Assembly: GCA_977017575.1 (NCBI GenBank)
Contig: CDRNVI010000044.1
Coordinates: forward strand, 310,001-374,000
Origin: Paramoeba atlantica
Taxonomy: Eukaryota > Protista > Discosea
Direction: 5' to 3'
DNA: 64,000 bases
The notes under the pieces were generated by a model. The model had not been told where the DNA came from. It searched no databases and saw only the letters and a list, made by a program, of their open reading frames with translations. Numbering within the stretch: the first letter of the stretch is position 1; the number at the start of each line of letters is the position of its first letter. Below are positions 1-57,160 of this stretch, piece by piece. Position numbers and translations under genes: made by a program.

Positions 1-768
1 GACAGAGCATCTTCCGGTTTGAGCTAGAGGGAACCCCGAACTAGAAGGGGCGGGGAGGAGTTTGAGTCGCACAGCGTCCATCGCCTTGAACTTCTGCGCA
101 AGCGCGGGGAGTTTCAGCGGACGCTCCATCGGGGCGGGGGCGTCGCTATCCATCGCTTCCGACGTGATCGGGGGGCGGTCGCCAGGCCAGGCGCCGAGAT
201 GCGGGCGTAGGACGTGCTCCGACTGTCGGAGGTGGGGAGAGGAGCGAAGGAAACGTTGGCTGCTTTCCTCAGGATGGGGGTAGGGGCCACCGTAGTACCT
301 ATACGGTCAAAGCTCCGGGATCGGCCCCGAGAGGAAGAAGAACGTGTGATCCTTACTAGCCGTGGAGTTGGCGCGGGAGGATCGAGAGGAAGACGTGGGA
401 CGGGATGGAGGGGTCCCAGAGGCTTGCGTCGAAGCACGCACTCTTATGTCGTTCCTGTGCCGAGAGCGCAGAGTAACGCACTCATCACGCAGGCGGTTGT
501 CCCGCCTGATTGGCACGAAAGGGGGGCCACAGAAGTCGCAGGCACATGGCTTGTGCTGCTCCTTGACTCGGACGACCAAGTCCGGCCTCACCTTCTTCAG
601 CCCCTCGATGGAGAGCTGGCGCAGCCCCTCGACCCCTAGGGAGGGGTGGGGGCTGGAGTCTCGTCTGAGAGGGGTGGTAGCAGGTCCCCCTGAGGTCGAG
701 GATGATGGGGTGTTAAGCCCAGTAGCGCAATCCTTGGATCCCCGGTGGTCACGCCGACGTCGCGTCAT
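1..768 (-). other. GC-rich minus-strand reading frame, open to the window edge except for one TGA at 307-309; unknown gene, pseudogene or retroelement ORF1 fragment
   Basis: ORF 307..768 contains CACDFC. The same frame continues without a stop from 306 to 1 (checked codon by codon; ...MERPLKLPALAQKFKAMDAVRLKLL...). No family recognised. Confidence 0.25.
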
Positions 769-1168
769 GGGTTTGCGCCGGGGAGAGAGAGAGTAGAGGT
801 AAAAAAGGATTCAACAATTATTTACTTGTATTTCATGAGCTCATTTTCTGAGGCTGAAATAAAGGCCATTCGTGCTTTCAATTTCCCATTTCGCTCGTCC
901 ATGTTTTGTCCATACAGTATCGGTGCGCTACCGAACTCTATAAGTGTGTCAAAAGTTTGTCAACCTGGTGTGCCATAATTTGAGCCCTAGAACTCCTATT
1001 TTCTATGAATGTCCCCGAATGGCTTGGTGTAAATAAGTCAAAGTCTTCTCTTTCGTCAATACCAATCTAGAAGGATTGTAAAATTGCTGAACTCGAAAAA
1101 ACTTTAAAGTATTTTTTTTTGAAAATAATTTGGGGGAAAAAAGGGAGATTCCACCAAAATGATTAATA

Positions 1169-3060: not shown

Positions 3061-3876
3061 ATGACCGAATTAACAAAGAGTATCAACGACGAAGTAACAC
3101 CGTCAGACGAAAGTACGTCCACCACACGTGCTGACCCACCCAAGCGCGAAGGAGACTGGGATTGTCCCGAGTGTCGCTACCCAAACTTTGCTTTTCGACG
3201 TACATGCAAAGCGTGTGGAGTTCTAAAGCCCGGGGCCTCTGAGGTTCAAGTCAACCCCGCCGATATTCAGAACATGCGACCCGGGGACTGGCTCTGCATC
3301 TCGTGTGCCAACCACAACTTTGCCTACCGCAAAGACTGTCACCGCTGTCGCACCTCACGATTCGCCACTCGCGACTTCAAACAACCCTTCCGTCCCGGGG
3401 ACTGGACCTGCCCCTCCTGTGACCACCACAACTTCGCCTCCCGTGAGAGCTGTCACCGTTGCCATGCCCCCCGTGGGAATCCCCCCCGCGGTGAGCCCCC
3501 CTCAAGCTACCCTCCCCCCTCCCCTTCCTCCTCCTCCTCCTCTTCCCGCCCCTACGGGTCGTACAACTACGCCGCGCCGTACAACGACAGCCGCGGGTAC
3601 CCCCCGCGGCAGTACCCCCCCGGGAGCCGCGGGGCCCCGTACGGGTATGAGCCCCGGAGCGAGTCCCCCCCGCGGTACGGCGACCCCAAGCCCCGCCCCC
3701 CCCCGACGTTCCGCTTCGGGGACTGGAACTGTCCGTGCGGGCGGGTGAACTTTGCGTTCCGCCTGCGTTGCAAATTCTGTGACGCCGCAAAGCCGCCGTC
3801 CGCCGCGGGGGGGAGGGAGGGGGGGTACGAGGAGGAGGAGGAGGAGCGGCGTGAGGAGAAGGGGAGGTTTTATTAA
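3061..3876 (+). CDS. RanBP2-type zinc-finger RNA-binding protein with four fingers
   Basis: Four GDW-x-C-x1-2-C-x3-NFA-x-R-x2-C-x2-C motifs, with a P/Y/R/G-rich linker before the last finger. Confidence 0.9.
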   Translation: MTELTKSINDEVTPSDESTSTTRADPPKREGDWDCPECRYPNFAFRRTCKACGVLKPGASEVQVNPADIQNMRPGDWLCISCANHNFAYRKDCHRCRTSRFATRDFKQPFRPGDWTCPSCDHHNFASRESCHRCHAPRGNPPRGEPPSSYPPPSPSSSSSSSRPYGSYNYAAPYNDSRGYPPRQYPPGSRGAPYGYEPRSESPPRYGDPKPRPPPTFRFGDWNCPCGRVNFAFRLRCKFCDAAKPPSAAGGREGGYEEEEEERREEKGRFY

Positions 3877-4257
3877 GGGAAGTGGTGGTGGAAGATACGT
3901 TTTGGGGGAACGGAAAGGGTTGGGGAAGGTTGTAGGTTGTTTGTGATTTTTTATCAAGGATTATTTTTATATATTTCATGTATTTGAAAAGGAGATGGTA
4001 TTTTCAGACTTGGGCACTTATTTAAGCTTTAGAATTCACCGGCTATTTTAGGAATGTCTGAGAAGAATATACTCAGTTCTACATGTTCAATACTCAACGG
4101 GTTGTATTTGAGTTTACTTGAGGATTCTGTTTATGATGCAAGGTTAGTTTCGGAGTTAAACTATAGAACGTACGTAGAAACGAGTTTTTTATCTCGTTCT
4201 CAACTTTTTTGATACAAGTTCTTCAGTTCTACGCTTTTTACCCTCTCCCCCCACCTC

Positions 4258-5520
4258 ATGACCGACGCCTTCCTCTCCAATCCCATGTTCACCGCGGGTA
4301 TGGGCCTGTACGGCGTGGCCGCGGGTGCCTTCGCTCTCCGCGGGGTCTCCCGGCTCGCCAAACTCTACCTCCAACGCAACTACTTTGTCTCCCTCGAGAC
4401 CACCTCCCGCGATGTCTCTTTCGACTGGCTCATGCGCTGGATGGCCCACGTCCGGGGCTTCCACCACACCTCCCACCTGAGTGTGTTAACCAAACGTGTG
4501 GAGATTCTCCCCAACGATCAAGTCACCGCAGAGGCGCTGCTGACGCCTGCGCCGAATCTCCCGCATGTGTTCTGGTACCGCTCTCGCCCCTTTCTGATTC
4601 AACGTCATCGGCCCTCCGATCGCTTAGCCTCGGCCTCAGGAAACGCAATGGATACGATCACCGAGACGCTCACGGTAACCACCTACGGGAGTGACCCCTC
4701 GGTGGTCACCTCACTTCTAGACGCGGCTAAAGCGTACGCCGCGAATCGTGAGTCCAACAAGACGGTGCTTTATCATAGCGCGGGAAGTCGATGGATTCGG
4801 GTCGCGGAGCCGAGGAGAAGACGGCCCCTGTCGAGTGTGATTTTAGATGATCAACGACAGGAGGCACTGCTGAAGGATGCGAGAGATTTTCTACAAAGTG
4901 CGGAGTGGTACCATGAGATGGGGATTCCGTACCGAAGGGGGTATTTGCTCCATGGTCCCCCGGGGTGTGGGAAGAGTTCGTTGGTGTTGGCGCTCGCGGG
5001 GGAGCTTTCGATGGCGATTTGTGTGTTGTGTTTGTCGCATCATTCGCTGGATGATGAGTCATTGACGCAGTTACTGAATGCGTCGCCGAAAAAGTGTGTG
5101 CTGCTGCTGGAGGATATTGACCGGGCGTTTCATAAGGAGAGCCGGGTGACGATGTCGGGGCTGTTGAATGCGTTGGACGGGGTTGCCGCACAAGAGGGGA
5201 GGATTCTTTTCCTCACCACCAACCATGTGGAAAAGCTTAGCCCGGCACTCATACGTCCTGGAAGGGTCGATGTTCGTGCGTACATTGGTTATGCCACTCA
5301 AAACCAAATTCGGTCTCTCTTCTTGCGATTCTTTCCTAACGAGGAACTGCTTGCTGAGAAGTTTATTGAGCGAATCCCTGAAGTGAATACTTCAATATCG
5401 GACGCGGACAAGAAAGATTCCTGCGTGTCAACGATCAGCATGGCACATCTGCAGGGCTTTCTCTTTCTATACAGGGAGGATCCGGAAGGTGCAGTTGAAA
5501 ACGTGTCAGACCTCTTATAA
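4258..5520 (+). CDS. BCS1: Mitochondrial AAA chaperone BCS1 (complex III Rieske protein insertion)
   Basis: N-terminal TM segment, RRRPLSSVILD, GIPYRRGYLLHGPPGCGKSS, LLEDID, SGLLNALDGVAAQEGRILFLTTNH, PALIRPGRVD. Confidence 0.95.
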   Translation: MTDAFLSNPMFTAGMGLYGVAAGAFALRGVSRLAKLYLQRNYFVSLETTSRDVSFDWLMRWMAHVRGFHHTSHLSVLTKRVEILPNDQVTAEALLTPAPNLPHVFWYRSRPFLIQRHRPSDRLASASGNAMDTITETLTVTTYGSDPSVVTSLLDAAKAYAANRESNKTVLYHSAGSRWIRVAEPRRRRPLSSVILDDQRQEALLKDARDFLQSAEWYHEMGIPYRRGYLLHGPPGCGKSSLVLALAGELSMAICVLCLSHHSLDDESLTQLLNASPKKCVLLLEDIDRAFHKESRVTMSGLLNALDGVAAQEGRILFLTTNHVEKLSPALIRPGRVDVRAYIGYATQNQIRSLFLRFFPNEELLAEKFIERIPEVNTSISDADKKDSCVSTISMAHLQGFLFLYREDPEGAVENVSDLL

Positions 5521-5659: not shown

Positions 5660-8600
5660 ATGCGCATACGGCAAGATCAAAATCTTTCGCAGGATCTGAG
5701 AAGAATCAATGACCAACTTGCCCAATCTCTAGAAAAGAAGGAAATTCAGTCCTTCCTCGATCACGGAGAGGACCCCAACGCACTAGATGAGGCAACTTCT
5801 CGTTTCAAGAGCTCTTTGCATGCGATAATACCTTTTCGAAGCCCCGAAGAGTATGATGAAAAGCTAAAAACCGAACAAGCTAGGTCGCGTCACCTCGTTG
5901 CCCAACGGAGAAGGGCACTTGCACTGCTTACCAAGACTACAACTAAAAAGCTTTCTTCCTTTGATGCATTGTTGGAGCAGACAGAGTTGTGGATGAGTAC
6001 GACGCCTGCTCATGAGAGTGAGGTAACGCAATCTCCGGTTCGAAAGCAGCGCTCCGGACCCGCGCGGGTATACTCTCAGGACGAATGTGCTTCACATGAG
6101 GATACAGAGAGGGAGATCAATTTGACACCCTCTTCTGTGCGTTCAAGGCTACAAGTAACTCCACCATATCTTTCCGGGGAGCTTCGCTCCTACCAACTTA
6201 ACGGAGTCAACTGGCTCGTTTCACTTCACGACAACGATGTGAACGGTATATTAGCAGATGAAATGGGGTTAGGAAAAACGTTTCAAACGATAGCATTTTT
6301 AGCTTACCTCAAGTTTGGAAGGAGTATACCAGGCCCCCATCTGGTTCTCTGTCCTAAAAGTGTTCTGGGCAATTGGGCTCGCGAATTTCGGATGTGGTGT
6401 CCTTCATTGCATGTGTACAGGTTTCATACTGGTCACGAACATCGAGATATGATGATAAAAGCGGTTTTGAATCCCTCTCAGCTCAAAAGGTACGACGTCA
6501 TAATATCGACATTCGAAATGGTAAGAATGGAACTTGGTTCCTTTCGTAAAATCATGTGGAACTACTTAATCGTCGATGAAGCTCACAGACTGAAATCTGA
6601 TGAGTCATTGACAACAAGCACAGTGCGCTCACTGAATACGTCACATCGACTCCTTGTGACCGGGACACCTCTCCAAAACAATTTAAGAGAGCTGTGGACG
6701 CTGCTGAATTTTGTAATTCCTGATTTGTTTACGAATGCCGATGAGTTCGATTCCTGGTTTGATACTTCTACAGGGTCTGGAGATGAGAGTGTCATATCCC
6801 GCCTCTACAAGCTGCTTGCACCTTTAATGTTGCGCCGCCTGAAGAGCGAAGTCAGCACAAGTATACCACCCAAAAAAGAAATTTATGTAGAGTGTGGATT
6901 AACAAGAATGCAAAAAGAACAATACACTGCGCTTTTAGCAAAGGATTACGAGACCATTAACAAAGGCTCCGCTCAGATGAAGCAACTCAGCAACATAGTG
7001 ATGCAGTTACGCAAGTGTTGCAATCATCCATATCTATTTGACGGTGTTGAAGATGGTCCTCCCTTTATTACGAACGAAGCTCTGGTTCAAGCCAGCGGAA
7101 AACTATCACTCTTGGATCGATTAATCAAAAAACTTAGGGCCGAATACGACGATGAGAGGCAGCACAAAGTACTCATATTTTCTCAAATGACTCGAATGCT
7201 TGACATTGTTGAAGACTATTGCAACTACCGTGGGTATCGATTTGGAAGAATTGATGGAGGGACATCTGCTGCTGACAGAGATCGTCAAATGCATGAGTTC
7301 AACAACCCGAAAAGCGATATGTTTCTTTTCCTTCTTTCTACACGCGCCGGAGGTCTCGGAATTAACCTTCAGGCAGCGAATTACGTTATCATTTATGATA
7401 GTGACTGGAATCCGCAGCAAGACTTGCAAGCGCAGGATCGTGCTCATAGATTGGGTCAAAAAAGACATGTAACAGTGTTGCGCTTTATTTGTGAAGGTAC
7501 ACTGGAAGAGCGAATATACAAACGTGCACTTAAAAAACTTTATCTGGACGCGATGGTCGTTCAGCAAGGAAGAATGCAGGCTAAAGAAGATTCGCTTGGT
7601 GCTAAGGAAATGCTTGGCATGATACGATTTGGCGTAGAGGCCATGTTCAAAAATAAAAACGAGCCCTTGCAGGAAGAAGATTTAGATGTACTGCTTAATC
7701 GAGGAGAAACGCGGGTAAAAGCGTTGCGAGAAGAGCTATTAGAAAAGCAAGAAACTACTCTGGCCAATTTTCATCTTGGGATTGAAGAAAGCAACATGTA
7801 TGAATTCGAAGGCATCAACTATAGTGACGAGGTTCCCAAGAAGACGCTCCTTGTAGAAGGCATCGACCAAACTATTTCCCAAGCAGATATTGAAAACACA
7901 CTTTCTCAATGGGATATTGCGCCGGCGCAGGTATTCATTAGCCCAGAACGCGACAAAACCTTGCTGTATCTTAAAAGTATTGAGGGTGCAAAAATAGTTA
8001 AACAAAGGCTAAAAATTCTAAAAGACTGTCTTAATATCAAGGTTACTTTTGTAACGCAGGACACATTCATTTCAAAGGAAATGTTGGACGACGTCAAGCC
8101 CGATGAAGCCGCCGAAGAGCTTGGTCGCGGAGCACGAGCACGAATGCGTCAACAGGTTACGGCGGAAAGAGTGGCAGAATATGAGCGCCAACAGGCTATT
8201 GAAGCGCTTAAAATGCCAAAGATTCCTAAATTACCCGAATTTAAGAAATTTCACTTAGTATCACCAACAATGCAGAAGCGTTTGACAGAAATTCACGACA
8301 CCGAAGTCTCTCTTATGATTCGCAAATGGGAGAAACAGGTTGAAATTTTGAAAGCGAAACGCGTATCTGTTCCAGGATCGGAATCACCGAAGACAGACAC
8401 TCCAGACAAGGGTACTGTTGAAGAAGAGATAAATCCTTTGGAATTTGAATTAACACTGGAGGAAAAAGAAGAGAAAGCGCGTCTTCTTCAGACGTGTGAG
8501 GAATTCACTGATTGGACGTACACAGAGGTGAGACAGGTGACTAATGCAATGATTCATCATGGTCGCTTAAATTTGGAAAATATATGCGATGTTTTGAAAG

Positions 8601-14337: not shown

Positions 14338-15153
14338 ATGCCCGCGTTTGCCAAAAATAGGTCTTTTTCGCTGTGCTACAACATCTTCGCACATTCTACA
14401 AGACAACATCATAGTAAAGTGTTCACTGAATGTAGTCAACTTGGAACACATGATTGTCGGATACAATTTTTGAGACGTATATCTCCGTGGCACGATATCA
14501 ACCTGCTCTTCCCTGGTTCTAAATTTAGCAGCAATCCAACTCTGCAGTTTGTGAACGAAATACCGAAAGGTTCTTATGCGAAATACGAAATACGAACCCA
14601 GGAGCCACTAAATCCTATTCGACAAGATACCAAGAAAGGAGCCCTACGTTATCTTCGATATCAAAATCAAGGAATTCCTTTTAATTACGGAAGTCTGCCG
14701 CAGACTTGGGAAGGATGTGACGCGACTTCGCTAGGACCGTATACTTTTGAGGGGTTACATGGTGATGGAGACCCCGTTGACGTAGTTGAATTATCTGAAA
14801 CCCCTATGGCGGTTGGAGAAATTCGAAAAATACGAATTATCGGTAGTATTGGGTTGATTGACGAGAACGAGATGGATTGGAAAGTGATTGCTAGGGCCAT
14901 CCCGTGCGATACAGAAGCCAGTGATATATTACGTACCGTTTCACGTGATGAATTGGAAGCAATAAAATCATGGTTTATTAACTACAAAACAATCGATGGT
15001 AAGCCGAAAAACGCTTTGATACGTGAGGGTAAATTCTACGATAGCAACTTTACGCTTCAGATGATTACTCATTCCAACAAATTATACTGTGATCTTTGTG
15101 AACATAAAATTTCCAATACGAAGGGCCTGTGGTTGCCTTCACACGATTACTAA
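14338..15153 (+). CDS. PPA: Family I soluble inorganic pyrophosphatase, possibly with an organellar presequence
   Basis: FVNEIPKGSYAKYEI, NPIRQD, FNYGSLPQTWE, GDGDPVDVVE, IDENEMDWKVI. Confidence 0.93.
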   Translation: MPAFAKNRSFSLCYNIFAHSTRQHHSKVFTECSQLGTHDCRIQFLRRISPWHDINLLFPGSKFSSNPTLQFVNEIPKGSYAKYEIRTQEPLNPIRQDTKKGALRYLRYQNQGIPFNYGSLPQTWEGCDATSLGPYTFEGLHGDGDPVDVVELSETPMAVGEIRKIRIIGSIGLIDENEMDWKVIARAIPCDTEASDILRTVSRDELEAIKSWFINYKTIDGKPKNALIREGKFYDSNFTLQMITHSNKLYCDLCEHKISNTKGLWLPSHDY

Positions 15154-15508
15154 GAAAATACTGAAATTCAAATAAAGAGAAAAATACGAATTTTCGCTTT
15201 CCTACTTCTACCTGATCGTCAGCAAAAGAAACGAGCGAGACACAGAAATCTGAAATTCGTAGCGAATTACTGTCATTTTGCATGTACCTTGTTTTTGTCT
15301 TTCAAATTGCTTATATACAGATATATATCATATATCACATATGGATACATATCATATATATCGAAGAATATTATAATGTTATTAAAACTAAAAAATGATA
15401 AACCAAAAGTCTCGAAGTTTTATGAAAATTTCAAAAAGAAATCTAAAATTCTGCATGCCTTCATCGAGAAGCACACGTTTGAAAATGTTTGCGACTAATT
15501 CGATGTAG

Positions 15509-16168
15509 ATGAAAAAATCACTGTCATCAGAGAGGGCTGAGCACGCTGAGGACGTCGGTACAACCTCTGCACCTTCATTTGTTTGTCGCAGTGGCCAACC
15601 ATGGAACCTCCTTCCAGCCACATTTCGGGCACGTCTCTTGTCCTGCTTCTCTTGGAGGCGTATGCGATTGTGGAATGAGTGCGAATGGCTTGAAAACGCA
15701 GTACGAAATGTACAAGAAATCACTTGCTATGGAGCACCACAATCCGTTTTGTCACCTGCCCAGCTTTACTTGGCTAAATTAGTACAGCTTCAACCTGAGC
15801 CAGAAATCGTTTTAGAATGTCTCCGACAGCCTCATTTTAAATACGTGACCGCTTTGTCAGCAGTTTACGTGAGGCTAGCTTGTGGAGCTGTCGACTGTTG
15901 GGAAATTCTTTCTCCATTTCTAAAAGATTTCCGCCCTTTAAGAGTGAGTATGAAACCTGTCGAATCTGAGGAACGCACGATTACACAGAAATTCGAAAGT
16001 ATCGACGATGAATATTACATGGATACGTTCATCTACGATCTTTTACACGTAGCTGGTCGCTGGAGACTACTTGATATCTCACTCCCACACATTCCGATTG
16101 GCTTGTTCAATGTGGAGAAGGCTTTGGGCAAGCAGTTTATTAATTCTTGTGACGTATTCAGCACGTAG
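15509..16168 (+). CDS. PRP38: Pre-mRNA splicing factor Prp38
   Basis: KLVQLQPEPEIV...HFKYVTALSAVYVRL...PFLKDFRPL...MDTFIYDLL. Confidence 0.8.
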   Translation: MKKSLSSERAEHAEDVGTTSAPSFVCRSGQPWNLLPATFRARLLSCFSWRRMRLWNECEWLENAVRNVQEITCYGAPQSVLSPAQLYLAKLVQLQPEPEIVLECLRQPHFKYVTALSAVYVRLACGAVDCWEILSPFLKDFRPLRVSMKPVESEERTITQKFESIDDEYYMDTFIYDLLHVAGRWRLLDISLPHIPIGLFNVEKALGKQFINSCDVFST

Positions 16169-16458: not shown

Positions 16459-17367
16459 ATGCACATGTTTTCATCCCTTCGCATCGGCTTCTTTCCCATC
16501 AAACGTCTCCTTTACTTAAACAGCGCCGATGATCAACCTCCTGCAAAACGTCGCAGATACGGCGCAAAGGTCAGGAATATTCTGCTTAGTGATGAGGAGA
16601 CAATGAAGCTGTTCGTACATAATCTTACTTCCGCCCCTGCTAGTTGGAAACGCGATGTATGTCAATGGAAGGGGATTTTTTGCAACAAGGCCAAGGAAAT
16701 AACAAAAATCGACTTTAAAGACACAAGTCTTACCGGAGTTCTCGACTGGAATCACTTTCCTGCTCATGTGACGAGCTTTCGATGCCAGCGTTGGCCAAAC
16801 ACGCCTGGGAAGCTCCGAGGGGAGATTCATACTCATCTGCTTTCTCCGTGTCTTGAACATTTACTACTATGCGCCAATCAGTTTACTGGGCCTTTCGATC
16901 TTACTACACTCCCACATGATATGATAGATCTTTACATCAATCACAATTTGTTCAATGGCCCCGCTGATCTTACTTCTCTGCCCCTTCAGCTTTCACGACT
17001 TTTAGCCACCAAAAACAGATTTGAAGGAACGATCGATCTCACGAGGCTCCCAGAACACCTTACGAAATTGGAGATTGGGCTTAATTTACTGTCAGGATCG
17101 CTAGATCTAACGAGGCTACCCAAAAAACTCTCCAGATTGGAGCTTTGCAAGAATACATTTGAAGGCGCAGTGGAACTGACGTCTCTGTCTTATCCACGAA
17201 TCAACATAGACTTGGGATATAATGCTCTTACAGGCTTCGTAGATCTAAGAGGTGTTCATAAGAAAACGCGCATAGACCTAAGAGGAAATAAGTTCGAGGG
17301 CTACCACGGTATGATACACAACGGCATAGAGCTCGACCAATGTGTGGTACACCAACCAGTGCCGTAA
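16459..17367 (+). CDS. Leucine-rich repeat protein of the type expanded in Perkinsela
   Basis: N-cap DVCQWKGIFC followed by repeats of N-x-F/L-x-G-x-x-DLT-x-LP. Confidence 0.85.
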   Translation: MHMFSSLRIGFFPIKRLLYLNSADDQPPAKRRRYGAKVRNILLSDEETMKLFVHNLTSAPASWKRDVCQWKGIFCNKAKEITKIDFKDTSLTGVLDWNHFPAHVTSFRCQRWPNTPGKLRGEIHTHLLSPCLEHLLLCANQFTGPFDLTTLPHDMIDLYINHNLFNGPADLTSLPLQLSRLLATKNRFEGTIDLTRLPEHLTKLEIGLNLLSGSLDLTRLPKKLSRLELCKNTFEGAVELTSLSYPRINIDLGYNALTGFVDLRGVHKKTRIDLRGNKFEGYHGMIHNGIELDQCVVHQPVP

Positions 17368-17415
17368 GGTAGAAGAAGCATCAGAAGATTTCATGTTTTA
17401 GGAGTGCATATTTTT

Positions 17416-17681
17416 GGGGAAAGTCAAGGAATATTGCATAAGTCAAGGAATACCCCACAACTACCACCTTCCCCCCATTTATCAGGGGTCGCTCGCGCGA
17501 CCCCCACTAAATAGGGGGGAAGGTGGTAGTTGTGGGGTATGGAGGCCTCTCGCAACTCCGGGGCCTCACCGGGTGCAGGACAGAAGTGCGAGGGCTTTAA
17601 TTTCAATGGTTCCTGACTTACGCAATATTTCCTGACTTATGCAATATTCCTTGACTTATGCAATATTCCTTTACTTTGGCC
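17416..17681. mobile_element. 266-bp foldback MITE with MULE-like ends and an 8-9 bp target duplication
   Basis: CATATTTTT at 17407-17415 and CATATTTTC at 17682-17690. 30-bp inverted repeats 17420-17449 / 17648-17677 (1 mismatch) built from 19-bp units. Internal perfect 27-bp stem 17450-17476 / 17514-17540. Confidence 0.7.
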
Positions 17682-17813
17682 CATATTTTCTATAGCCTGA
17701 AATATCATACGAAAAACCTTTACTTCCGGTCGAAAACGCTTCGCGGCGCAATCTTTTTTTTTGAACAATTTTCTACTTTTTTCTTTAAAACGTTAGAGGT
17801 GTGTGTAGAGATA

Positions 17814-18819
17814 CTGTCCCCCCCTACTTATGCGCAACCGTTTGACCCGGCCACTTAAGCGCAATTTTGACGCATCGTTCAGAAGAACAGCGCCGCAAAG
17901 CGGCGCGATTTTTTTTTGTGGTACGAATTTTTGTACCAATTTTCGCCGCTGTTGAAATGGAGAGTCTGCAGGCAGTCCCTTTGGGCGTTGAAAAATGATC
18001 TCCATCGATCTCCTCTGATCCACACTGACCTCCGCCGATCTGTACGGCGAGTCTTTGCATTCTATACTGTACTGTACATCAGAGGAACTCTCCTGCCACG
18101 TACTGTACGCTTTTGAAATGATCAGTGCACCAGCGTGCGGCACCGCCTAGATATAGGGCGGGTAAATATAACGTGGGTAATTGCACTACAAGTGCATGAT
18201 AAACTAAACTTTAATTTATATTTCGGACCCAAGCTCTTAAAAGTCCGTTCTTTTCCTACAATTGATCGGGTGCTCGCGAAAAAGGCACTTACCTCGTGAT
18301 GTGGTCATTCGCGGGCATAAGTAACCATACAAGCGAAGTACTGTACCTCCTCCCTAGTTATCTCTCACACGTCACCCCCTGTCCGACTGATCTTCCAATG
18401 AATCGGTAAACCCTTCGAACCTCGAAAAAATACCTACAGCGTTCGCAACCGGTCGCGATCTGTCGTTACCGATCGAGATTGGTTGCCACCGTTCGACAGC
18501 GAGCTACAGGTACCGTCTGCACCCCCTCCACTGATGGTACTAACGCCGACCAACTACCATTTTCTTTAATTAATTTTAATAAATATAATTATAACTCATT
18601 TTTCCCAGGGCACCCCGCGTACATAACTCATGATTTAAACACGCGTCGCGAAATTTTTTTTTCACCTCTTTTTTTGACCCGGCTACTTATGCGCAATGTT
18701 AGGCCAAAACCTGGTTGCGCTTAAGTGTCACCCCCCCTTTATACTTAGGAAAGTCAGACCCCCCCCTTTATACTTCCAAAAGTACCGAAACCGGTTGAAG
18801 TATAAAGGGGGGGTGACAG
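17814..18819. mobile_element. Composite ~1-kb TA-flanked element with CTGT...ACAG ends
   Basis: TA-CTGTCCCCCCTAC at the left and GGGGGGGTGACAG-TA at the right. CACTTAAGCGCAA inverted near both ends. Sub-element 18725-18819 has perfect 21-bp inverted repeats (18726-18746 / 18798-18818). Confidence 0.5.
18412..18530 (+). repeat. Dispersed repeat family C, copy 1
   Basis: Aligns by eye with the reverse complement of 60327-60444 and partly with 60648-60706. Confidence 0.8.
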
Positions 18820-19239
18820 TAATTGAAAAAAGATTTTCACCTCGGGCCGTGACAATTACTCAAAAATTATCGCAAATATTTCATTCTATCGTTACTCCTC
18901 CATGTCGGCTTGAGGGTTTTTCCGTGATCTCTTTAATCTCGTCTTGTTTTTTCCCCGTTTTAGACAAAGTGTATCTTACTAAACAGATGTATTTTTGTTC
19001 TCATCTCCCCTTATTGCATTCAGAAATAATGATAATGATAATAATAATGATATTCTCTCGGAAAAAATGTTATTATCATTATCATTATTTATGAGAGGGG
19101 GTGTACTCTTCTTTTGATTAATTTTTAGCCAACACATAGCCTGTAAATCTGATAGTCTAGAATTGCTTTTCGAACTGTTCATACATATAAGTATTGCAAT
19201 TGCATATTAAATATAAATATTGCATAATTTAATATTTTA

Positions 19240-19850
19240 GGCTCTTCGTTAAACGCGGTGGTTGTTTTCAACTTAGAAGTCACTCATGCTGCGCGCTTCG
19301 CGTTGAAAAATCCCGCCGCGTTTAACGAAGAGCCTAAAAAAGAAAATTTAGCCTGGAAAACGGAAAGATTATAGCCAAAAATAGCCGAATTTCGGGTACA
19401 AATGGGGTCATTTTCGCATATTTTTGCTCTCAGAGCACTAAATCCGACATTTGCACGTGGGAAATCACTCGCAGGCATGAATGGAAGCCTACCGAACGTA
19501 TTGGGTAGAGAATACGACTCCAACCATACCATTCTTTCGACACAAAAATGCCCCTTTAGGTCCGAAAAATACTTTTTCACCTTTTTTAGTCAAAAATGGG
19601 TCATTTTGAGGGGCGCACCACGGTTCGAAGAAGTGATACCTTGCGAAAACAATTGCGTAGAAAGCTAGTGTAGGTCCCAAACTATCAAAATACAATAGGG
19701 GAAACGATTTTGGAAAAATATTTTTTTTGTCATTTTTTTCGCCAAGTTGAAATTTTTTTCAAAAAAATTTTTCCGAAAAAATCCGAACTTGGCGGACCCG
19801 TCCTGCGGATACGCGGGGGGGTCACCCCCGGGTAGGGGGGTGGAAAATGC
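19240..19850 (+). repeat. Dispersed repeat family B, copy 1, starting with a 95-bp TA-flanked hairpin
   Basis: TA-GGCTCTTCGTTAAACGC...GCGTTTAACGAAGAGCC-TA (19240-19334). The GC-rich far end (19780-19850) matches the reverse complement of 56605-56690. Confidence 0.7.
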
Positions 19851-19926: not shown

Positions 19927-20011
19927 CCCCCCCCCCTGGACCCCCCCCCTGGACCCCCCCCCCTGGACCCCCCCCTGGACCCCCCCCCTGGACCCCCCCC
20001 ATGGACCCCCC
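19927..20011. repeat. C6-10-TGGA tandem array; G-quadruplex-capable on the minus strand
   Basis: Seven C-runs (10, 9, 10, 8, 9, 8, 6) separated by TGGA or ATGGA. Confidence 0.9.
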
Positions 20012-20263: not shown

Positions 20264-22735
20264 ATGGAACGAATTTTATTCACTTTTGTGGAAATGGTAG
20301 GACAAGTTGCCACGGCCCATTTAGCTGATGGTACCATTTTAGAAGGTGTTTTTGCGTCCTACTCCCCCGTTGAAAAAGCGATAATGCTTCTAAAGTGCCG
20401 ACGACTAGTCAGCGAAGTACACAGTCTTTCTGAAAATAGTGATGCCAAGGATGTGTCCATGATTCCTACTGTCAACCTCATTCAATTAAAATTTTCCCGT
20501 ATTTGTCAAGAACAAAGCTCCATCATGAGACATTTACGAGAGAAGCAAATCACGAGAAGCGAAAGCTGTGATAAATCAGTGACAAGCTTTGCGAACTGGG
20601 CAGATGAGGACGACGAAGATGAAGATGACGTTTTGGAGAAGGAGAAATCACATCGAGCAGGCTCTTGGGACCAATTTAAAGCAAATGAGCACCTTGTACG
20701 CGGGAAAAGCACTTACGATGAGCTGCTTTATACTACTTCTATTCCTAAAAATCTTACAAGGGATCAGCGTGAATATGCTGAACGTGCGGCCAGAAAAATA
20801 GAACGCGGTAAGGTCGTCAATCTTCAACATGCGGTGGATCGTGGCATTGAGATAGGCGCAGATTATGATGAGGAAAGGCTTTTTAGCGGCGTGGAACGTC
20901 CTAAAGGAAGAAGTTCTCCGAAAAAGTCTCGTGACCTGATAGGTGGCCTGAATGTCAACGCATACATTCCTCCTGGACGTCGTGAAGCTGGAACACCTTC
21001 TGGGTTACTCATAAGCGAGAACATAGTTAAAGAGGAAGCCCCGAGATCTAGGTCGGTAGATGAGATTCCACGTACCTTACCTATTGACAAGCAAACTACT
21101 TCTGAAGAAACTCCGGACGTTTCGAAAGAGACAACTGCTTCAAAAACATTTCTGAATCCCAATGCACGTGCTTTTACTCCTAGTTTTGTGACTTCTTTAG
21201 AGAAAACAGCTAAAACGGTCACAGAATCACCTCCAAACACTTGGAAACCAGATCTTAGAATCTCTTTTCTTCGCGAAAAGGACGGCCTGCTTCGGCACCT
21301 CTGTCAACAGGAACACCTACGTCACCCCAACGCCGAGAGGGCTATTCCAGCCACAGAATCCTATGCTTCACAGACCCCGGAGTCCTCTCTGTACTCAAAG
21401 CCCACAGAGGACATGAGCACCAGTGCGGTCTCGACGCAGCCTCACCTTTACCCTCCTCTCCCCGCGGGGGACACCCATGGCATCATCACCCCCTCGGTCA
21501 CTCCTCCAGTGAACTACGGTACCTACACCTATGCACTCTCCGACGGAACCGTGGTAGAGCCTTGGGACGTCGAAGCCCTTCACTCCGCCGCATCCTCCTC
21601 GGCCGCCTACCCCCACCAAACCCCCTCTACCCCCTATGTGGGTCATCTCCGTTCCGACATGTCCGAGCTCCCGCCGGAGTTCAAACCCTCACGCGCCCAG
21701 GTACCTACCCCGCTGATGACCACCCCCTACGGCTCGGGGCACCACCTCTACGCCGAGAGCTCTCTCGGAGGAACCCCGAGTGAGTACTACTACCACCCCT
21801 CCGAGACGCTTCCGTCCCATGAGGCCCGGCAGCCCGGGTCCTACACAACAGCGTCACACGCGGGTTACCCTCACTACCCCTACCCCGACCCTCACGGGTA
21901 CGCAGCTCAGTACACCACCCCGCTGTCCTGGGAGGCCCGGTACCCGGTAGCTCACACCCATGTGGGCGCCTACGACCCGCGGGTTAAGCCGTTAAGGAGT
22001 GGACGGGGAGGTGAGGCTTTTGTTTCCGGGATAGCGCACGGCACGATGCCGAGTGGGGAGTATTCGAACCGTGCTACGGGTCGAGGTTCACATTACTATT
22101 CAAGGACGCATTACCCGGAGTCAAAGCAATCTACAGGGGGTGGGGGTGGTCGACGTGCTGCCTCCACCGGGGCTACGCATGCCCCTCGTGGGAGATACGA
22201 TCGGGAGCGCAAGCCGCTGGCAGAGCAGCTGAGTGCGTCGACCCCGGTGAATTTTCCTCCTCCCCCCGGGAGTCCAATGGGGAGCCTCACTGCCACGGGA
22301 GTGTCGTTTGAGCCAAACTCGCAAACTACTCCTCCGGGGGTCACCGTGGCTCCGGTAGTTCCTACGATCATAACAAGTGCTTCTGCGGGATCTACACGGC
22401 CGATTTTACCTACGAAAGAGGTTGAACAAAGCGAGGCTTCGGTCGAAGGGAGCTCACGAGGAGGCATCTCGCGTCATCGCCATCGGCCCTCTACTCCGCC
22501 ATCTTCAACGAAAATGCCCGCAAAAACAGTGGCGGGGATGCAGAGAGAGTCGCCGGTACGGTCCTCACAGTCCAGTAGTCTGGAGAGCTCGGATGCTCCG
22601 CCGAGATCTGCGCCTTCAAATGAGAAAGCACCTTCTGCTGGTGGTGACTCCCGCGGTACGGTGACAACACCTAAATCATCGAAGGAAAAGGGTAAATATT
22701 TCAACCGAAAGTCTCACCCAAAACCTCATTCATAA
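20264..22735 (+). CDS. PBP1: Ataxin-2/Pbp1 homolog (LSm, LsmAD, PAM2)
   Basis: LSm-like AHLADGTILEGVF; LsmAD WDQFKANE...STYDELLYTT...NLQHAVDRG; PAM2 FLNPNARAFTPS. ATG at 20264; the upstream part of the listed ORF is repeat DNA. Confidence 0.9.
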   Translation: MERILFTFVEMVGQVATAHLADGTILEGVFASYSPVEKAIMLLKCRRLVSEVHSLSENSDAKDVSMIPTVNLIQLKFSRICQEQSSIMRHLREKQITRSESCDKSVTSFANWADEDDEDEDDVLEKEKSHRAGSWDQFKANEHLVRGKSTYDELLYTTSIPKNLTRDQREYAERAARKIERGKVVNLQHAVDRGIEIGADYDEERLFSGVERPKGRSSPKKSRDLIGGLNVNAYIPPGRREAGTPSGLLISENIVKEEAPRSRSVDEIPRTLPIDKQTTSEETPDVSKETTASKTFLNPNARAFTPSFVTSLEKTAKTVTESPPNTWKPDLRISFLREKDGLLRHLCQQEHLRHPNAERAIPATESYASQTPESSLYSKPTEDMSTSAVSTQPHLYPPLPAGDTHGIITPSVTPPVNYGTYTYALSDGTVVEPWDVEALHSAASSSAAYPHQTPSTPYVGHLRSDMSELPPEFKPSRAQVPTPLMTTPYGSGHHLYAESSLGGTPSEYYYHPSETLPSHEARQPGSYTTASHAGYPHYPYPDPHGYAAQYTTPLSWEARYPVAHTHVGAYDPRVKPLRSGRGGEAFVSGIAHGTMPSGEYSNRATGRGSHYYSRTHYPESKQSTGGGGGRRAASTGATHAPRGRYDRERKPLAEQLSASTPVNFPPPPGSPMGSLTATGVSFEPNSQTTPPGVTVAPVVPTIITSASAGSTRPILPTKEVEQSEASVEGSSRGGISRHRHRPSTPPSSTKMPAKTVAGMQRESPVRSSQSSSLESSDAPPRSAPSNEKAPSAGGDSRGTVTTPKSSKEKGKYFNRKSHPKPHS

Positions 22736-23254
22736 AATGCGTCAAACATGGATGAAAGATTTTTTGTCCTCATACTTTTTCACATCGGAAGTTTGTTTGT
22801 TCTAAAGACATGAAGCTAGGAATGTTCTAGAGACATGAAGAAATGGAGGAGTCAACCTCCCTTTCGTGACCACGTGCGCAAGGATTGGAGATCGGTAATC
22901 CTTTTTATGTTTTATTGAGCTTTCTTATTGGGCGCACAATAGCCTGTATGTACAGTACTGTATGTGCAATAGACTACTGTATGTAGATCAGTACCCATCC
23001 TTTTTTACTTCTATTCGACTTACTTTTCTTCATTATTCATTAGCCTATTGAAGGACTTCAAGCCAATCTGTTTCTGTTTCATGTGGCCTATACAAGAAAA
23101 TATGTTTGTAATGAAATCTACTTAGTGTGCGGGATTTTGGCGTTTACTCTTTTAATGTTCCTGGGTTGCATTTTACTGGTATTTCCATCAAAGCCATCTT
23201 ACATCTGAGGAGTAGAACTTAAAGGTGGAGGACATCCAAGGAAGTTTGAGCTAG

Positions 23255-26987: not shown

Positions 26988-27073
26988 TACTAGAAGAGTG
27001 CTAAAATTTATCTACTATCATATTGGATCAACATAACGTTTTTGTCACTAAGCTGAGATCACAACCCCTTAAC

Positions 27074-28513
27074 ATGCAACCTTCTACACCTCGTCTTTCG
27101 TTTCAACGTTCTCCGTCTCACCTTCTCAGCAGTCGGGGCGCAAAAGCCGCAGGAGTATTCTCTTACCCCATCCCACCTGCTCCAGCCCCTACTTTCCAGC
27201 CCGGTGCTTCCTCGGGGCCCTCAAACCGGTACCTCGTTCTGGGGGAGGGAATCACTGCACCCTTTATGGCGCTTTGCCTTCGCCTTCGTGGGCTAGAGTG
27301 TGATCTCGCGATCACCCAGAGTCCGGAGAGTGACCAGGACCGGGGGTCCGTGGTGCTTACCCCGGGTGCCACACAAGTGCTCGGGGATGTCATGGGGATT
27401 TCCGTCCCCCACGGTAGTGTGGCAGGTCGGCTGATCTCATTCGACCACGTAGGGAATGACCTCTGCGATCTCGATCTCGCGGGACTCTGTGAGAAGGGCG
27501 ATGAGGCACCGACGTTCTACTGCTGCGATCGGCAACGCATTGAGGACTCTCTGCTGTCACTTTGCCGGCTCAGCCAGTACGCATGTACAGTACTTTCCCC
27601 AGGCTCAGTTGTGGATGCGCGGACAATGACCGTGGCGGGAGAAGATTGCGTCAGTCTTCGGTTTCTGAACAACCCAGGCGTAACACGGGTGTACCGGAAA
27701 GTGATTGCTACATCACGTCATCACTCGATACTCCCCGACTGTTCTCAAACGGATGAGCAAACAAGGTACCATGTGCAGAACGAGGAGACATTAAGTGACG
27801 CGAAATCTCTTCGGTGGTTGGAGTACAAAGTACCAGAGTTTTCACCCGTCACGGACATGGAAAAACGGTTTACCCCTGGGAGTCAAGAAATCGTTGAAAT
27901 TCTTACTCCAACAGAGTCTAAGGTGATTGTAAGACCGATGATGAGCCCTTCACGGTTGTACTACAGTGTCATTTTGAGCCTTTCCGAGGAACTTTCCGAT
28001 CCTCGCCGTACGAGTTGCGATCCCACTACCTTCTGGCGAGAGCTGGTGCGCGTCTTCACTGGCAATCTCCCGGGCTACATTTCCCACACAATGTTTAAAC
28101 CTCTGATTCTTCACACGCAAAAGTACACAACGGCGAGAGACTTTCTGGTCTACCGTACCCCGCAGTACGTTCTCCCCTTTTGGTCAGAGATGGATGGGAA
28201 GTTTCTTCGCATAGGCCACTCGGCGCACTGTTCACACACTGATGCGATTGACGTCACAGAGGCAATCGCCTTTCAGGATTGTATGGAACTTAGCTCCCAA
28301 CTAGCCAGTAATACTGTCAACGCCCCACGCTGGCTGCAAGAAACGCGTCGTCCCGAGGTCGAAAAGATGTATTCGCATCACCAGAGTTTACTTGACTACG
28401 CCCTCCTACCGCGAACGACATTCGGCTATGTATGCAGTCGTTTCAAAATGCGCTTTATGGGCCGTTACAAAAGGGCTTGGAAAAAACTTCTGTTCCCTCT
28501 GCGAAGGTTTTAA
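27074..28513 (+). CDS. FAD-dependent monooxygenase-fold protein with degenerate motifs
   Basis: RYLVLGEGITAPFMALCL at the Rossmann position, CDRQRIEDSLL, and RIGHSAH at the GDAAH position. Confidence 0.6.
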   Translation: MQPSTPRLSFQRSPSHLLSSRGAKAAGVFSYPIPPAPAPTFQPGASSGPSNRYLVLGEGITAPFMALCLRLRGLECDLAITQSPESDQDRGSVVLTPGATQVLGDVMGISVPHGSVAGRLISFDHVGNDLCDLDLAGLCEKGDEAPTFYCCDRQRIEDSLLSLCRLSQYACTVLSPGSVVDARTMTVAGEDCVSLRFLNNPGVTRVYRKVIATSRHHSILPDCSQTDEQTRYHVQNEETLSDAKSLRWLEYKVPEFSPVTDMEKRFTPGSQEIVEILTPTESKVIVRPMMSPSRLYYSVILSLSEELSDPRRTSCDPTTFWRELVRVFTGNLPGYISHTMFKPLILHTQKYTTARDFLVYRTPQYVLPFWSEMDGKFLRIGHSAHCSHTDAIDVTEAIAFQDCMELSSQLASNTVNAPRWLQETRRPEVEKMYSHHQSLLDYALLPRTTFGYVCSRFKMRFMGRYKRAWKKLLFPLRRF

Positions 28514-31407: not shown

Positions 31408-33459
31408 ATGAGTGTTGTTGCAGTTCATGAAGCTCCTCTTGCCGCTCGAGATGTTGAAACAGACAGTGTCAGCTCCGTAGTCTCTCATGAAGTAGGGGGG
31501 TCTCTTTATGTCGGAGATTTGGGTCCCAATGTGTCCGAGACAGCGCTTTTTGAGCATTTTCAATCCGTGGGTCCCATGACGTCAGTGCGTATTTGTCGTG
31601 ACGCCATTACTCGCCAATCCTTGGGGTATGGATACGTCAATTTTGCGGATGCTGCCCATGCACAAACCGCCATTGAGACCAAAAATAGTTCGTATCTTAC
31701 TGGATCTTGTATTCGTGTAATGCCCGTGCAAAGGGATCCTACCACACGGCGAAACGCAGCGGGAAATATTTTTATTAAGAATTTGCCACCTGACTTGAAC
31801 ACAAACTTACTGCTCGATATGTTTCGGTCCATAGGCAATATTCTGAGTTGCAAGGTAGTCGTCGATGAAAAAGGAAAAAGCCGGGGTTATGGATTTGTTC
31901 ATTTCGCAAATGAAGGAGATGCCGAAGTGGCAATTAAGGATTTCAATGGGAAATTTGTCAACAGTCTGGAGCTTTATGTGGCCCCTTTCGTGCGACGTGC
32001 CATACGCCAACAGCAAATGCAAAACAATTACACCAATGTGTACATCAAACATCTTCAATCAGCGACTACGGAAGAGGATATCCGTGAGCACTTTAAGCAA
32101 TTTGGGAGTATCACCAGTACATGCACAAAAAAGGACCCCACGGGTCGTCTATTCGCATTTTGCAGCTTCTCGAAGCACGACGAAGCTGTAAAAGCGATTG
32201 AGGAATCACATGACAAGAACGTGGAAGGTATCACTGATGCAGATCTTAAGCTTTATGTCCAACGAGCCCAGAAAAGATGGGAACGTCTAGCAGAGCTACG
32301 AGCCCGTTACGAGCAAAACCGTTTTTCCGGCTTGGGATCCAAAGGCAACAACTTGTATGTGAAGAACTTCGGAGACCATGACAGCACAGAACTGCGAGAT
32401 TTGTTTCGCGAGTACGGTGAGATTAACAGTGTGTTTGTCGCCAAGGATGATACCGGAGCCCCCCGTGGGTACGCCTTTGTGTGCTTTTCCAAAGCCGACG
32501 CCGCAAGCCAAGCTCTCCGCGAGATGAATGGCCGCCTGTTAAACAACAAACCCCTCTACGTCAACGTGGCACAAAAGAAAGAAACCCGCCGCACCATGCT
32601 CCAAATCCAGTTCAGTCGTCCTCAAGGCATCGGCAACCTCCCGGGGGCCTACACCGGGTACGGCACCGTTGGACTCACCTCCAGCTACGGCGTCAACACC
32701 GCCCTGATGCCTTTTCGGTGGTACTCCTCCCCCCAGGCCGCGGCGTTGTTTATGTACGACCCCGCGACCTCCTCTCACGGAGCAGGAGGCGGGCTCCCCC
32801 CGTACGCTATCCCCCGTCCCCTGTCCCGACGACAACTCCCCCCGGCACGTGGTCGCGTCCCCTACCGAGGAGCAGCAGCAGCAGCAGCAGCAGCCTACCA
32901 TGACCGACGCCTCTCTCGTCGACCGCAGCCCCAAAGTGTATATCATGACAGACAGCAACAGCAGCAGCAACAGCATCTTGTGGAAAATCCAACAGAAGCA
33001 GCAGGAGCGGGGCTGGTGCCTCCAACCGGGGGGTTGGTGGAAGGCACTGGGGTGGGGGGGGCCCTCCCCTCGGTGCCCTCCACTCCCGCGTTACGTAGTG
33101 AGACGGGGGGTAGTACCGCGGGTGGGGTGGGCAAGACCCCCTCCCGGCTGCATGGGACCCCTGTGGGGACGCGACCTGTGCCGCTGCCCTCCCCGATGCT
33201 GTCCGCGACACTGAAGGTGGAGGACCTCGCGGGGTTGTCCGTGGAGGAGCGTCATGGGGTGCTGGGGGAGCGGCTGTATGTGGCGATCCATGGGATCTAC
33301 CCTGAGGAGGCGCCGAAGATTACGGGAATGCTGCTGGAGACGGAGCCGGAGGAGTTGGTGCGGTTGTTAAGCCACCCGGCGGATTTGCAGGAGAGGGTGC
33401 GGGAGGCGTATGGTGTGTTGCAAGCCTACCGGAAGCGGAGTGAGGAGTATGGTACGTGA
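31408..33459 (+). CDS. PABP: Poly(A)-binding protein (4 RRMs plus MLLE)
   Basis: SLYVGDL, SLGYGYVNF, GNIFIKNL, SRGYGFVHF, TNVYIKHL, NLYVKNF, LGERLY...KITGMLLE. Confidence 0.97.
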   Translation: MSVVAVHEAPLAARDVETDSVSSVVSHEVGGSLYVGDLGPNVSETALFEHFQSVGPMTSVRICRDAITRQSLGYGYVNFADAAHAQTAIETKNSSYLTGSCIRVMPVQRDPTTRRNAAGNIFIKNLPPDLNTNLLLDMFRSIGNILSCKVVVDEKGKSRGYGFVHFANEGDAEVAIKDFNGKFVNSLELYVAPFVRRAIRQQQMQNNYTNVYIKHLQSATTEEDIREHFKQFGSITSTCTKKDPTGRLFAFCSFSKHDEAVKAIEESHDKNVEGITDADLKLYVQRAQKRWERLAELRARYEQNRFSGLGSKGNNLYVKNFGDHDSTELRDLFREYGEINSVFVAKDDTGAPRGYAFVCFSKADAASQALREMNGRLLNNKPLYVNVAQKKETRRTMLQIQFSRPQGIGNLPGAYTGYGTVGLTSSYGVNTALMPFRWYSSPQAAALFMYDPATSSHGAGGGLPPYAIPRPLSRRQLPPARGRVPYRGAAAAAAAAYHDRRLSRRPQPQSVYHDRQQQQQQQHLVENPTEAAGAGLVPPTGGLVEGTGVGGALPSVPSTPALRSETGGSTAGGVGKTPSRLHGTPVGTRPVPLPSPMLSATLKVEDLAGLSVEERHGVLGERLYVAIHGIYPEEAPKITGMLLETEPEELVRLLSHPADLQERVREAYGVLQAYRKRSEEYGT

Positions 33460-57067: not shown

Positions 57068-57160
57068 TAAAGAATAGTTTTTTTTTTAAAAATCATAAAA
57101 TGAAACTTACATTTTTTCTTTTTGTGTTTAAAGCGAATGGTCGTTCGTGGTGCCATTATA

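Follow-up and report, generated by a model that had tools for sequence, protein, structure and literature searches.

Why does one strand of a GC-rich stretch turn abruptly from C-rich to G-rich in the middle of a gene, in DNA that is otherwise AT-rich? Sign flips of strand composition are a main sequence-only clue to the starts of replication, transcription, and recombination, and start sites are poorly defined in kinetoplastids. The flips analyzed here lie in a 64-kb stretch of DNA (hereafter the window) with a median GC content of 43%, in which the GC skew per kb stays near zero. A sequence-only reading of the window had counted 39 C and 6 G residues at positions 3481-3540 and 38 G and 3 C residues at positions 3811-3870, and both counts are exact. 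It had also claimed that the pattern recurs; indeed, the same C-then-G order is present at five places in the AT-rich window. The observation is confirmed as real, is stronger than had been claimed, and lies well beyond chance. Which process could leave such a trace?

Source and gene content of the window

The window has at least 27 ORFs, which are intron-free and all on the plus strand. Pfam matches were found for a bromodomain/MRG protein, a RanBP2-type zinc-finger protein, BCS1, and ISWI, and further for an ataxin-2-like protein, PIF1, a poly(A)-binding protein, and SF3a60. The best named relatives of the window BCS1 are those of Prokinetoplastina sp. PhM-4 (58%) and Perkinsela (52%), followed by diplonemids and trypanosomatids. 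Judged from such similarities, the DNA is that of a kinetoplastid near Prokinetoplastina. Since the closest sequence in a collection of 5.8 billion proteins is only about 60% identical, the source is an unsampled kinetoplastid; it is uncultured, and its only record is a metagenome contig.

The source contig is ENA ERZ24900291 ctg3964l of 86.5 kb, of which 84.65 kb was stitched and scanned. All recognizable genes across the stitched 84.65 kb and the window (ORFs of at least 150 amino acids with a family match or a coding-like sequence) use a single coding strand. Minus-strand ORFs called within the GC-rich stretches gave no Pfam match, and no tRNA or Rfam RNA genes that could mark start sites were found in the window. 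Thus, the islands sit inside the genes of a single unidirectional cluster of about 85 kb and not at a unit boundary, in agreement with the sequence-only reading.

The five islands

The window has five GC islands, each 0.9-1.5 kb in length (about 1.2 kb) and each with a C-rich block on the left and a G-rich block on the right. The minima of the cumulative G-C skew lie at positions 3717, 4717, 21978, 32977, and 36421, which define islands A to E. A sixth example comes from L008, a different contig of this assembly (at about 6250-6900, with the flip at about 6724), and the sample amounts to five or six islands of one genome. Within the cluster, the density is about one island per 14 kb. Each island begins as a C plateau of 35-50%, in which G stays at the baseline, and continues as a G plateau of 35-45%, in which C does not exceed its baseline. 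The switch is step-like, lies at the middle of the island, and is completed within about 100-150 nt. Most halves are 520-770 nt in length (0.5-0.8 kb), and the skew is back to about zero at 0.5-0.8 kb from the flip. The coordinates of the blocks given below carry no strand.

Island A (3100-3990) reaches 82% GC, and its skew in 100-nt windows changes from -0.55 to +0.85. The C-rich block (3250-3717) lies within the RanBP2-type zinc-finger gene (3061-3876); its third codon positions have 99 C and 30 G, and 100-nt windows have up to 56 C with 15 G. The G-rich block (3718-3990) consists of the final 160 nt of the gene and about 115 nt of its 3′ flank, with 30 G and 13 C at third positions and 56 G and 9 C at 3800-3899. 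The C-rich block of island B (4200-4717) comprises 58 nt of 5′ flank and the first 460 nt of the BCS1 gene (4258-5520), with 77 C and 40 G at third positions. The start of this gene has 33-34 C and 9-10 G at the third positions of 50 codons. In the G-rich block (4718-5250), which encodes the AAA domain region of BCS1, third positions have 90 G and 24 C, or 28-32 G and 2-5 C per 50 codons.

Island C lies in the 3′ part of the ataxin-2-like gene, which ends at 22735. Its C-rich block (21270-21978) has a C plateau of 41-47% and third positions with 114 C and 58 G; its G-rich block (21979-22750) has 87 G and 39 C at third positions and ends at the stop codon. The C-rich block of island D (32300-32977) is in the poly(A)-binding protein gene (31408-33459), and third positions have 101 C and 44 G (27-29 C and 8 G per 50 codons). 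The G-rich block (32978-33600), with 93 G and 27 C at third positions (32-36 G and 6-10 C per 50 codons), covers the MLLE-domain end of the gene and about 140 nt of the 3′ flank. Island E, the weakest one, is located in a nameless ORF (35627-36949). Its C-rich block (35930-36421) has 45-47% C in 150-nt windows and 63 C and 33 G at third positions, and its G-rich block (36422-36950), which ends at the stop codon, has 72 G and 37 C.

The G blocks of islands A, C, D, and E finish at or just beyond a stop codon. Island B extends from the 5′ flank of BCS1 to a point 270 nt ahead of the BCS1 stop codon. The right edges of four of the five islands are thus at most about 150 nt from a stop codon, with a post hoc p of about 3e-4 to 1e-3. 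No model considered in this study cleanly predicts the placement of G blocks at the 3′ ends of genes.

There are two other GC-rich stretches. Positions 1-800, without a recognizable gene, have 57-72% GC and more G than C throughout, and they are the right, G-skewed part of a block of about 2.1 kb, which may be an island of the same kind. This block begins about 1.35 kb before the window, directly after a retrotransposon (the upstream part was read in L001/L006), and none of its ORFs has a Pfam match. Positions 27100-27700, at the 5′ end of the ORF 27023-28513, have 59% GC, a skew of -0.02, and a GC3 of 54-70% with about as much G3 as C3. Thus, GC-richness does not always bring skew.

Skew at silent positions and in flanks

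Is the skew a by-product of the encoded proteins? The sequence-only reading had argued that protein sequence alone could not explain it, and that it would be refuted by a skew vanishing at third codon positions and in flanks. It was found that third positions carry the strongest skew. Comparison of C3 and G3 between the left and right halves (Fisher) gave p values of 7.5e-8 for island A, 5.7e-12 for B, 1.6e-9 for C, 1.6e-14 for D, and 6.9e-6 for E. In the pooled five islands, the third-position GC skew is between -0.24 and -0.57 on the left of the center and between +0.37 and +0.55 on the right. In BCS1, C3 and G3 per 50 codons change from 33 and 10 to 2 and 32.

The skew is also kept in the flanks. 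The G-rich half of island A passes the stop codon at 3876, and the 3′ flank at 3877-3990 has 38 G, 43 T, and 4 C (p=6e-8). Similarly, the 3′ flank of the island D gene (33460-33600) has 40 G and 9 C (p=9e-6), and the 5′ flank of BCS1 (4200-4257) has 21 C and 4 G. A general tendency of genes for G-rich 3′ flanks and C-rich 5′ flanks was rejected, as only the flanks adjoining islands are skewed. A skew that peaks at silent sites of the conserved BCS1 and enters the flanks leaves the protein sequence insufficient as its cause, as had been claimed. Rather, the low-complexity parts of the proteins track the DNA, being Pro/Ser-rich in C blocks and Gly/Glu/Arg-rich in G blocks. In first and second positions of derived BCS1 codons, there is a weak and uninformative trend, with 10 C and 3 G in the left half and 11 C and 6 G in the right half.

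Selection on the protein or the mRNA might act through expression-tuned codons, an mRNA hairpin formed by the C-rich and G-rich parts, or the amino acids of disordered regions. The products of three of the five host genes do bind RNA and have low-complexity regions, and PMC5896880 indicates that codon choice alters the mRNA level in trypanosomes. Island A folds more stably than its shuffled sequences (-307 versus -254 kcal/mol), which is due to the complement of (CCT)n and (GAG)n. However, the fold of island B is no more stable than that of shuffled sequences, and long inverted repeats were not found, only short low-complexity complements, so that a palindrome or hairpin was rejected. Against such selection, the sign changes within single genes, only parts of genes are affected, and the skew spills into flanks; it is strongest at silent sites of a globular protein, BCS1, whose orthologues lack it. 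Moreover, no translational model wants C-ending and then G-ending codons in one mRNA. A cause in protein composition was rejected by the codon-position analysis. Selection on the protein or mRNA is largely excluded, and I regard it as very improbable.

Relatives and mobile elements

No island or flip was found in the BCS1 genes of four relatives (L002, L003, L004, and L010). The bromodomain-BCS1-ISWI synteny is kept in L002 and L003, and L004 is a third BCS1 locus. In L010, the nearest relative, the order of the zinc-finger and BCS1 genes is kept, GC3 is generally higher, and the zinc-finger gene has a mild C3 excess. Codon usage or another gene-intrinsic cause was thus rejected. Since these relatives are distant (protein identity of 53-61%), the BCS1 comparison goes no further than showing that the gene itself does not dictate the pattern.

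Could the islands have been brought in by a mobile element or another shared sequence? This was rejected, as blastn revealed no similarity among the islands or to the nearby retrotransposon. Insertion of a retrotransposon at the flip was also rejected; the flanks of three copies have no consistent C-left and G-right order. No motif common to the flips was seen by eye within 100 nt on either side. The lack of homology among the islands or to the retroelement and the lack of a shared motif suggest that the islands arose in place.

Base changes in the two halves

The four-fold degenerate sites of the background have 28% A, 20% C, 20% G, and 33% T, corresponding to 40% GC, while GC3 within the islands climbs to 80-96%. 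In C halves, the four-fold sites have 13% A, 50% C, 23% G, and 14% T, and in G halves, 16% A, 17% C, 48% G, and 19% T. A and T are lost about equally, and a single base is gained per half. Thus, which way round a new G:C pair lies depends on its position and not on the base that was replaced. At codons with a choice between C and T, the share of C in G halves is 0.40 versus 0.39 in the background, and there is thus no general shift from A/T to G/C in the G halves. At codons with a choice between A and G, the share of G in C halves is 0.60 versus 0.41 in the background, so that the likeness of the two halves is imperfect.

The A/T skew does not flip. At third positions, it is negative on both sides, with only two bins near zero, and four-fold sites have T/A ratios of 1.10 (C halves), 1.22 (G halves), and 1.18 (background). 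The observed/expected CpG ratio is 1.00 in the background and 0.88 in the islands, so there is no depletion. In three retroelement copies that are 97-99% identical, 44 S-to-W and 21 W-to-S substitutions were counted as the background spectrum. The islands are thus maintained against AT-biased drift.

These data bear on the two processes to which the flips had been ascribed in the sequence-only reading, namely a bidirectional replication origin and bidirectional R-loop or GT-rich initiation. The polarity agrees with both; the coupling of T>A, the long-range persistence, the CpG contrast, and the T-richness of silent sites that they entail do not agree with the data. In replication initiation zones, forks would leave the center in both directions, and the asymmetry of leading and lagging strands would mark the first several hundred bases. 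C-then-G is the polarity of an origin, and origin-like two-way asymmetries exist at human CpG islands (PMC2817419). There are indications from Leishmania and T. brucei reports of dense initiation sites of low efficiency, and as context, genes for PIF1 and GINS are nearby in the genome. However, a replication skew should persist along the replicon, and here it is confined to 0.5-0.8 kb per side. T>A should join G>C and both should flip, yet the sign of the A/T skew is the same on both sides. The amplitude, up to 0.5-0.9, is far beyond any known replication skew, and the GC gain is left unaccounted for. I therefore consider replication unlikely as the source.

Alternatively, the islands may be two-way start regions of RNA polymerase II, or R-loop islands, inside the cluster, with the G-rich strand as the non-template strand on each side. 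The skew would then be selected for directional initiation or for deposition of a histone variant, or be a by-product of damage to the displaced strand. The polarity agrees with that of divergent T. brucei start regions and of CpG-island promoters that work in two directions. The 10-mers that are in excess on the coding strand of T. brucei start regions consist of G or T runs, and directional transcription and H2A.Z deposition are driven there by synthetic elements of 210-416 bp (PMC5579346). The island halves are similar in size to these elements, and four of the five G blocks lie just upstream of a spacer and the next gene, which a sense-facing element could feed. Against this, the islands lie in the coding sequence of one same-strand cluster and are far denser than known kinetoplastid start regions, and initiation would make antisense RNA across the upstream gene halves. 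T at silent sites of G halves falls from 0.33 to 0.19, while the non-coding tails are G/T-rich, as in the 3′ flank of island A. The A/T skew is without a flip, the logic of CpG islands fails (the background is undepleted and the islands are lower), and the strong GC gain is left without a reason. This explanation seems unlikely, though less so than replication.

It may also be that the islands are selected two-way initiation sites, for replication, transcription, or both, which are written into silent positions and in which the G-rich strand sets the direction. I hold this to be rather improbable.

Polarity and island edges

The sequence-only reading would also have failed if C-to-G and G-to-C flips had been equally common. 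About 155 kb of this genome, including the source contig of about 85 kb, was scanned for flips, with a 52% GC filter in one scan, and no comparable G-then-C island was found in it; the islands stand out as C-to-G flips within GC-rich DNA. Three G-to-C flips passed the 52% GC filter (contig position 16871, which is window position 4078; L008 6971; and L009 6043), and the other G-to-C flips are in low-GC sequence. Two of the three (window 4078-4106 and L008 6971-7024) are junctions at which a G block meets the next C-rich start across an AT-rich spacer; the one in the window separates islands A and B. The flip at L009 6043 begins in a G-only minisatellite. The G-only blocks in L009 were rejected as islands since they are minisatellites with units of 11-12 nt.

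All five islands have the same sign combination, of four possible ones, with p of about 0.001 in this small sample. Since the order of a C block and a G block is identical when read on either strand, it belongs to the site and is independent of gene direction.

Do breaks occur at the edges of the islands rather than at their centers? Breaks or nicks in nucleosome-free spacers could be processed inward, and the exposed 3′-ended strand would turn G-rich, as could happen if C is inserted opposite damaged bases. A gene between two active spacers would then become C-rich at its 5′ end and G-rich at its 3′ end. Sharp outer edges often do coincide with gene ends or spacers (4200, 3990, 22750, 33600, and 36950), and islands A and D are most skewed at the right edge, where C is 3-7%. 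The AT-rich spacer at 3990-4200 lies between G-rich DNA to its left and C-rich DNA to its right, which fits as well. However, islands C, D, and E begin in mid-gene, where there is no spacer (left edges at 21270, about 32300-32450, and 35930), and C-richness is lacking in the genes that follow the G blocks of these three islands. The pooled profile is a step at the center and does not fade toward it. Breaks at the edges are thus quite improbable as the cause.

A possible break-repair origin

The islands look like the footprint of a DNA process that is symmetric around fixed points. The explanation that I favor, though tentatively, is that they are recurrent break-repair or recombination hotspots with strand-resolved, GC-biased repair. 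The break zone would be the C-to-G flip, a fixed site at which breakage and homologous repair recur. On each side of the break, about 0.5-0.8 kb would be resected, re-synthesized, and kept as a heteroduplex with the partner chromatid. Repair of the heteroduplex would prefer G:C over A:T, like GC-biased gene conversion, but it would be strand-resolved in that the strand made 5′ to 3′ away from the break acquires G. This could happen by two routes: G-containing mismatches may be settled toward G, with other mismatches corrected against the new strand, or repair synthesis may over-insert G. By symmetry, the gain on the top strand would be of C on the left side of the break and of G on its right side. 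In the course of many generations, the process would override AT-biased mutation at all sites free of selection, namely silent positions, low-complexity segments, and nearby flanks. The data show the compositional pattern with its symmetry and scale, that it does not depend on protein coding, and that the relatives' BCS1 genes lack it. From this I infer that the flips are the places of breakage, that the driver is biased fixation and not hypermutation, and that the strand rule applies.

A fixation bias of the gene-conversion type is the known way to such a GC gain, and a bias of this type is favored by a GC3 of 80-96% against an AT-biased background. The repair reading is also favored since the pressure reaches all codon positions and the flanks and shapes low-complexity protein, and since each half gains one base in a mirror symmetry with a step at the center. 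The half length of 520-770 nt is on the scale of resection and recombination intermediates in yeast, in which meiotic resection has a mean of 822 nt and recombination intermediates are 606 bp in length (bioRxiv 10.1101/067199). As the BCS1 genes of the relatives have no island, turnover would fit as well.

On the other hand, some features count against break repair. The flips are in coding sequence, not in spacers. In organisms that lack a targeting protein, breaks usually occur in nucleosome-free spacers, to which the intergenic regions of kinetoplastids would correspond. The strand rule is an added assumption, because GC-biased gene conversion of the ordinary kind works at the level of base pairs and would be expected to raise G and C alike. 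The asymmetry of the halves, with G raised in C halves and C not raised in G halves, is another such feature, and so is the ending of four of the five G blocks at the 3′ end of a gene, which break repair does not predict.

Implications

Standard models do not predict a third-position skew of plus or minus 0.5 over about 1.2 kb of conserved coding sequence, with one base gained per half and no A/T part. The mechanism of biased gene conversion is still debated; if break repair is the true cause, the islands would be a natural record of the winning strand in this process. If initiation takes place at the islands, no other sites of this kind would have been defined by sequence before within kinetoplastid gene clusters. 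If they are selected two-way initiation elements, initiation signals and the protein code would overlap over about 1 kb. In either case, the pressure shapes the low-complexity regions of proteins and matters for inferring selection or codon adaptation.

Comparison with known systems

At bacterial oriC and at the upward jumps of human N-domains, the skew persists over the replicon together with T>A. The islands have the same negative-to-positive sign change, but it reaches only 0.5-0.8 kb and the A/T skew is without a flip. Human CpG islands (Polak and Arndt 2009, PMC2817419) are likewise about 1 kb in length and GC-rich, with an excess of A/T-to-G/C changes inside. They also show asymmetries of complementary bases with opposite signs on the two sides and an origin-like polarity (PMC2817419). 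In contrast, the islands described here have no CpG contrast, the A/T skew is uninvolved, and the amplitude is about ten-fold larger. The asymmetry reaches up to a megabase at human CpG islands (PMC2817419) and only the island itself here, and the present islands are in the coding DNA of a polycistronic cluster.

T. brucei and Leishmania major belong to the same phylum, and their start regions (Wedel et al. 2017, PMC5579346) resemble the islands in polarity. As G runs lie on the strand transcribed away from the center, divergent start regions read C-rich and then G-rich, and the active elements are a few hundred bp in length, as are the island halves. For GT-rich dispersed promoters and skew at start regions, McDonagh 2000 and Siegel 2009 are also cited in PMC5579346. 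The T. brucei elements are G- and T-rich and lie at cluster boundaries in H2A.Z domains of 5-10 kb (PMC5579346). In contrast, the present islands, which are known from sequence alone, are intragenic, lie far closer together, and combine G-richness with a low T content at silent sites. In the literature searched, islands of this kind were not found to be described for kinetoplastids.

GC peaks are also found at the recombination hotspots of yeast, birds, or dogs. The GC outlier genes of gerbils (PMC7403616) resemble the islands in a local and lineage-specific extreme GC3, which arose against AT-biased mutation and spilled over into amino acids. Unlike at gene-conversion GC peaks, the rise within a given half of an island is limited to either C or G. 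I know of no mirror G/C skew at gene-conversion GC peaks. The islands differ from CpG-island asymmetry, from the skew of T. brucei start regions, and from gene-conversion GC peaks, in each case in a defining respect.

A retrotransposon upstream of the window

It was found that a 5.2-kb non-LTR retrotransposon lies on the window's own contig, in the sequence reaching upstream of the window (L006:6199-11379), and stops about 1.4 kb short of window position 1. The reverse-transcriptase ORF of this element encodes 1240-1617 amino acids. Further copies were found at L007:9693-14869 and, on another contig of the assembly, at L008:8495-13457. The copies share 97-99.5% identity and are spread over three or more contigs of the assembly, and recent activity of the element is therefore probable. 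The element is situated between a HEAT-repeat gene and the bromodomain gene, and these two genes are direct neighbours in the distant relatives represented by loci L002 and L003.

The retrotransposon is flanked on either side by GC-rich sequence, about 3 kb in total with 55-70% GC, in which no gene was recognised. The downstream part, which comprises window positions 1-800 and the preceding 1.35 kb (L006:11450-13580), is G-skewed, and the upstream part (L006:5250-6150) is slightly C-skewed. The two parts might be a single large island split by the insertion, but the skew on the left side is weak.

Genes and gene calls around the GC islands

A RanBP2-type zinc-finger gene (3061-3876) lies between the bromodomain gene and BCS1. 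It encodes four zinc-finger repeats, two of which (3277-3344 and 3391-3458) are about 80% identical in DNA. The gene is kept in the nearest relative (L010); loci L002 and L003 have no such gene at this position. The BCS1 gene (4258-5520) encodes 420 amino acids in full length, whereas the public protein set has a 290-residue BCS1 (P0001), for which the gene caller used an internal start. Prokaryote-style gene calling on this eukaryotic contig also produced spurious antisense ORFs within the GC islands, among them 3377-3979 and 4727-5191 on the minus strand.

Around the listed start of the ataxin-2-like gene, a C-rich tandem repeat, (CCCCCCCCCTGGA) x 6.5 (19928-20011), comes after a brief run of G-rich sequence (19790-19846) and precedes a T-rich tract. 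The ORF with a listed start at 19847 spans the repeat region, and this position is probably not the true start of the gene. The repeat may be the trans-splicing pyrimidine tract, and its bottom strand can form G-quadruplexes.

In three stretches of 2.5-4.9 kb (17368-19846, 52522-55482, and 55987-60880), neither strand carries a long ORF or any Pfam-worthy one, and there are no tRNA or Rfam matches. They contain several short tandem repeats (e.g., 17610-17676 and 58274-58331). Such stretches are unusual compared with the tightly packed cluster elsewhere, whose spacers are 140-600 nt.

Contig ctg3515l (L009) of the same assembly carries a second retrotransposon family, whose reverse transcriptase is 60% identical. 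Three GC-rich minisatellite blocks (L009:5650-5880, 15100-15560, and 16650-17100; 70-89% GC, 50-64% G) were found there, with GCGCGGCGGGA-like units of 11-12 nt. Two of the three, adjoining a retrotransposon, are copies of each other with 99% identity and are separated by 1522 bp. The blocks were considered as islands of the genic type and rejected; because they are G-only and repeat-based, they differ in kind from the genic islands.
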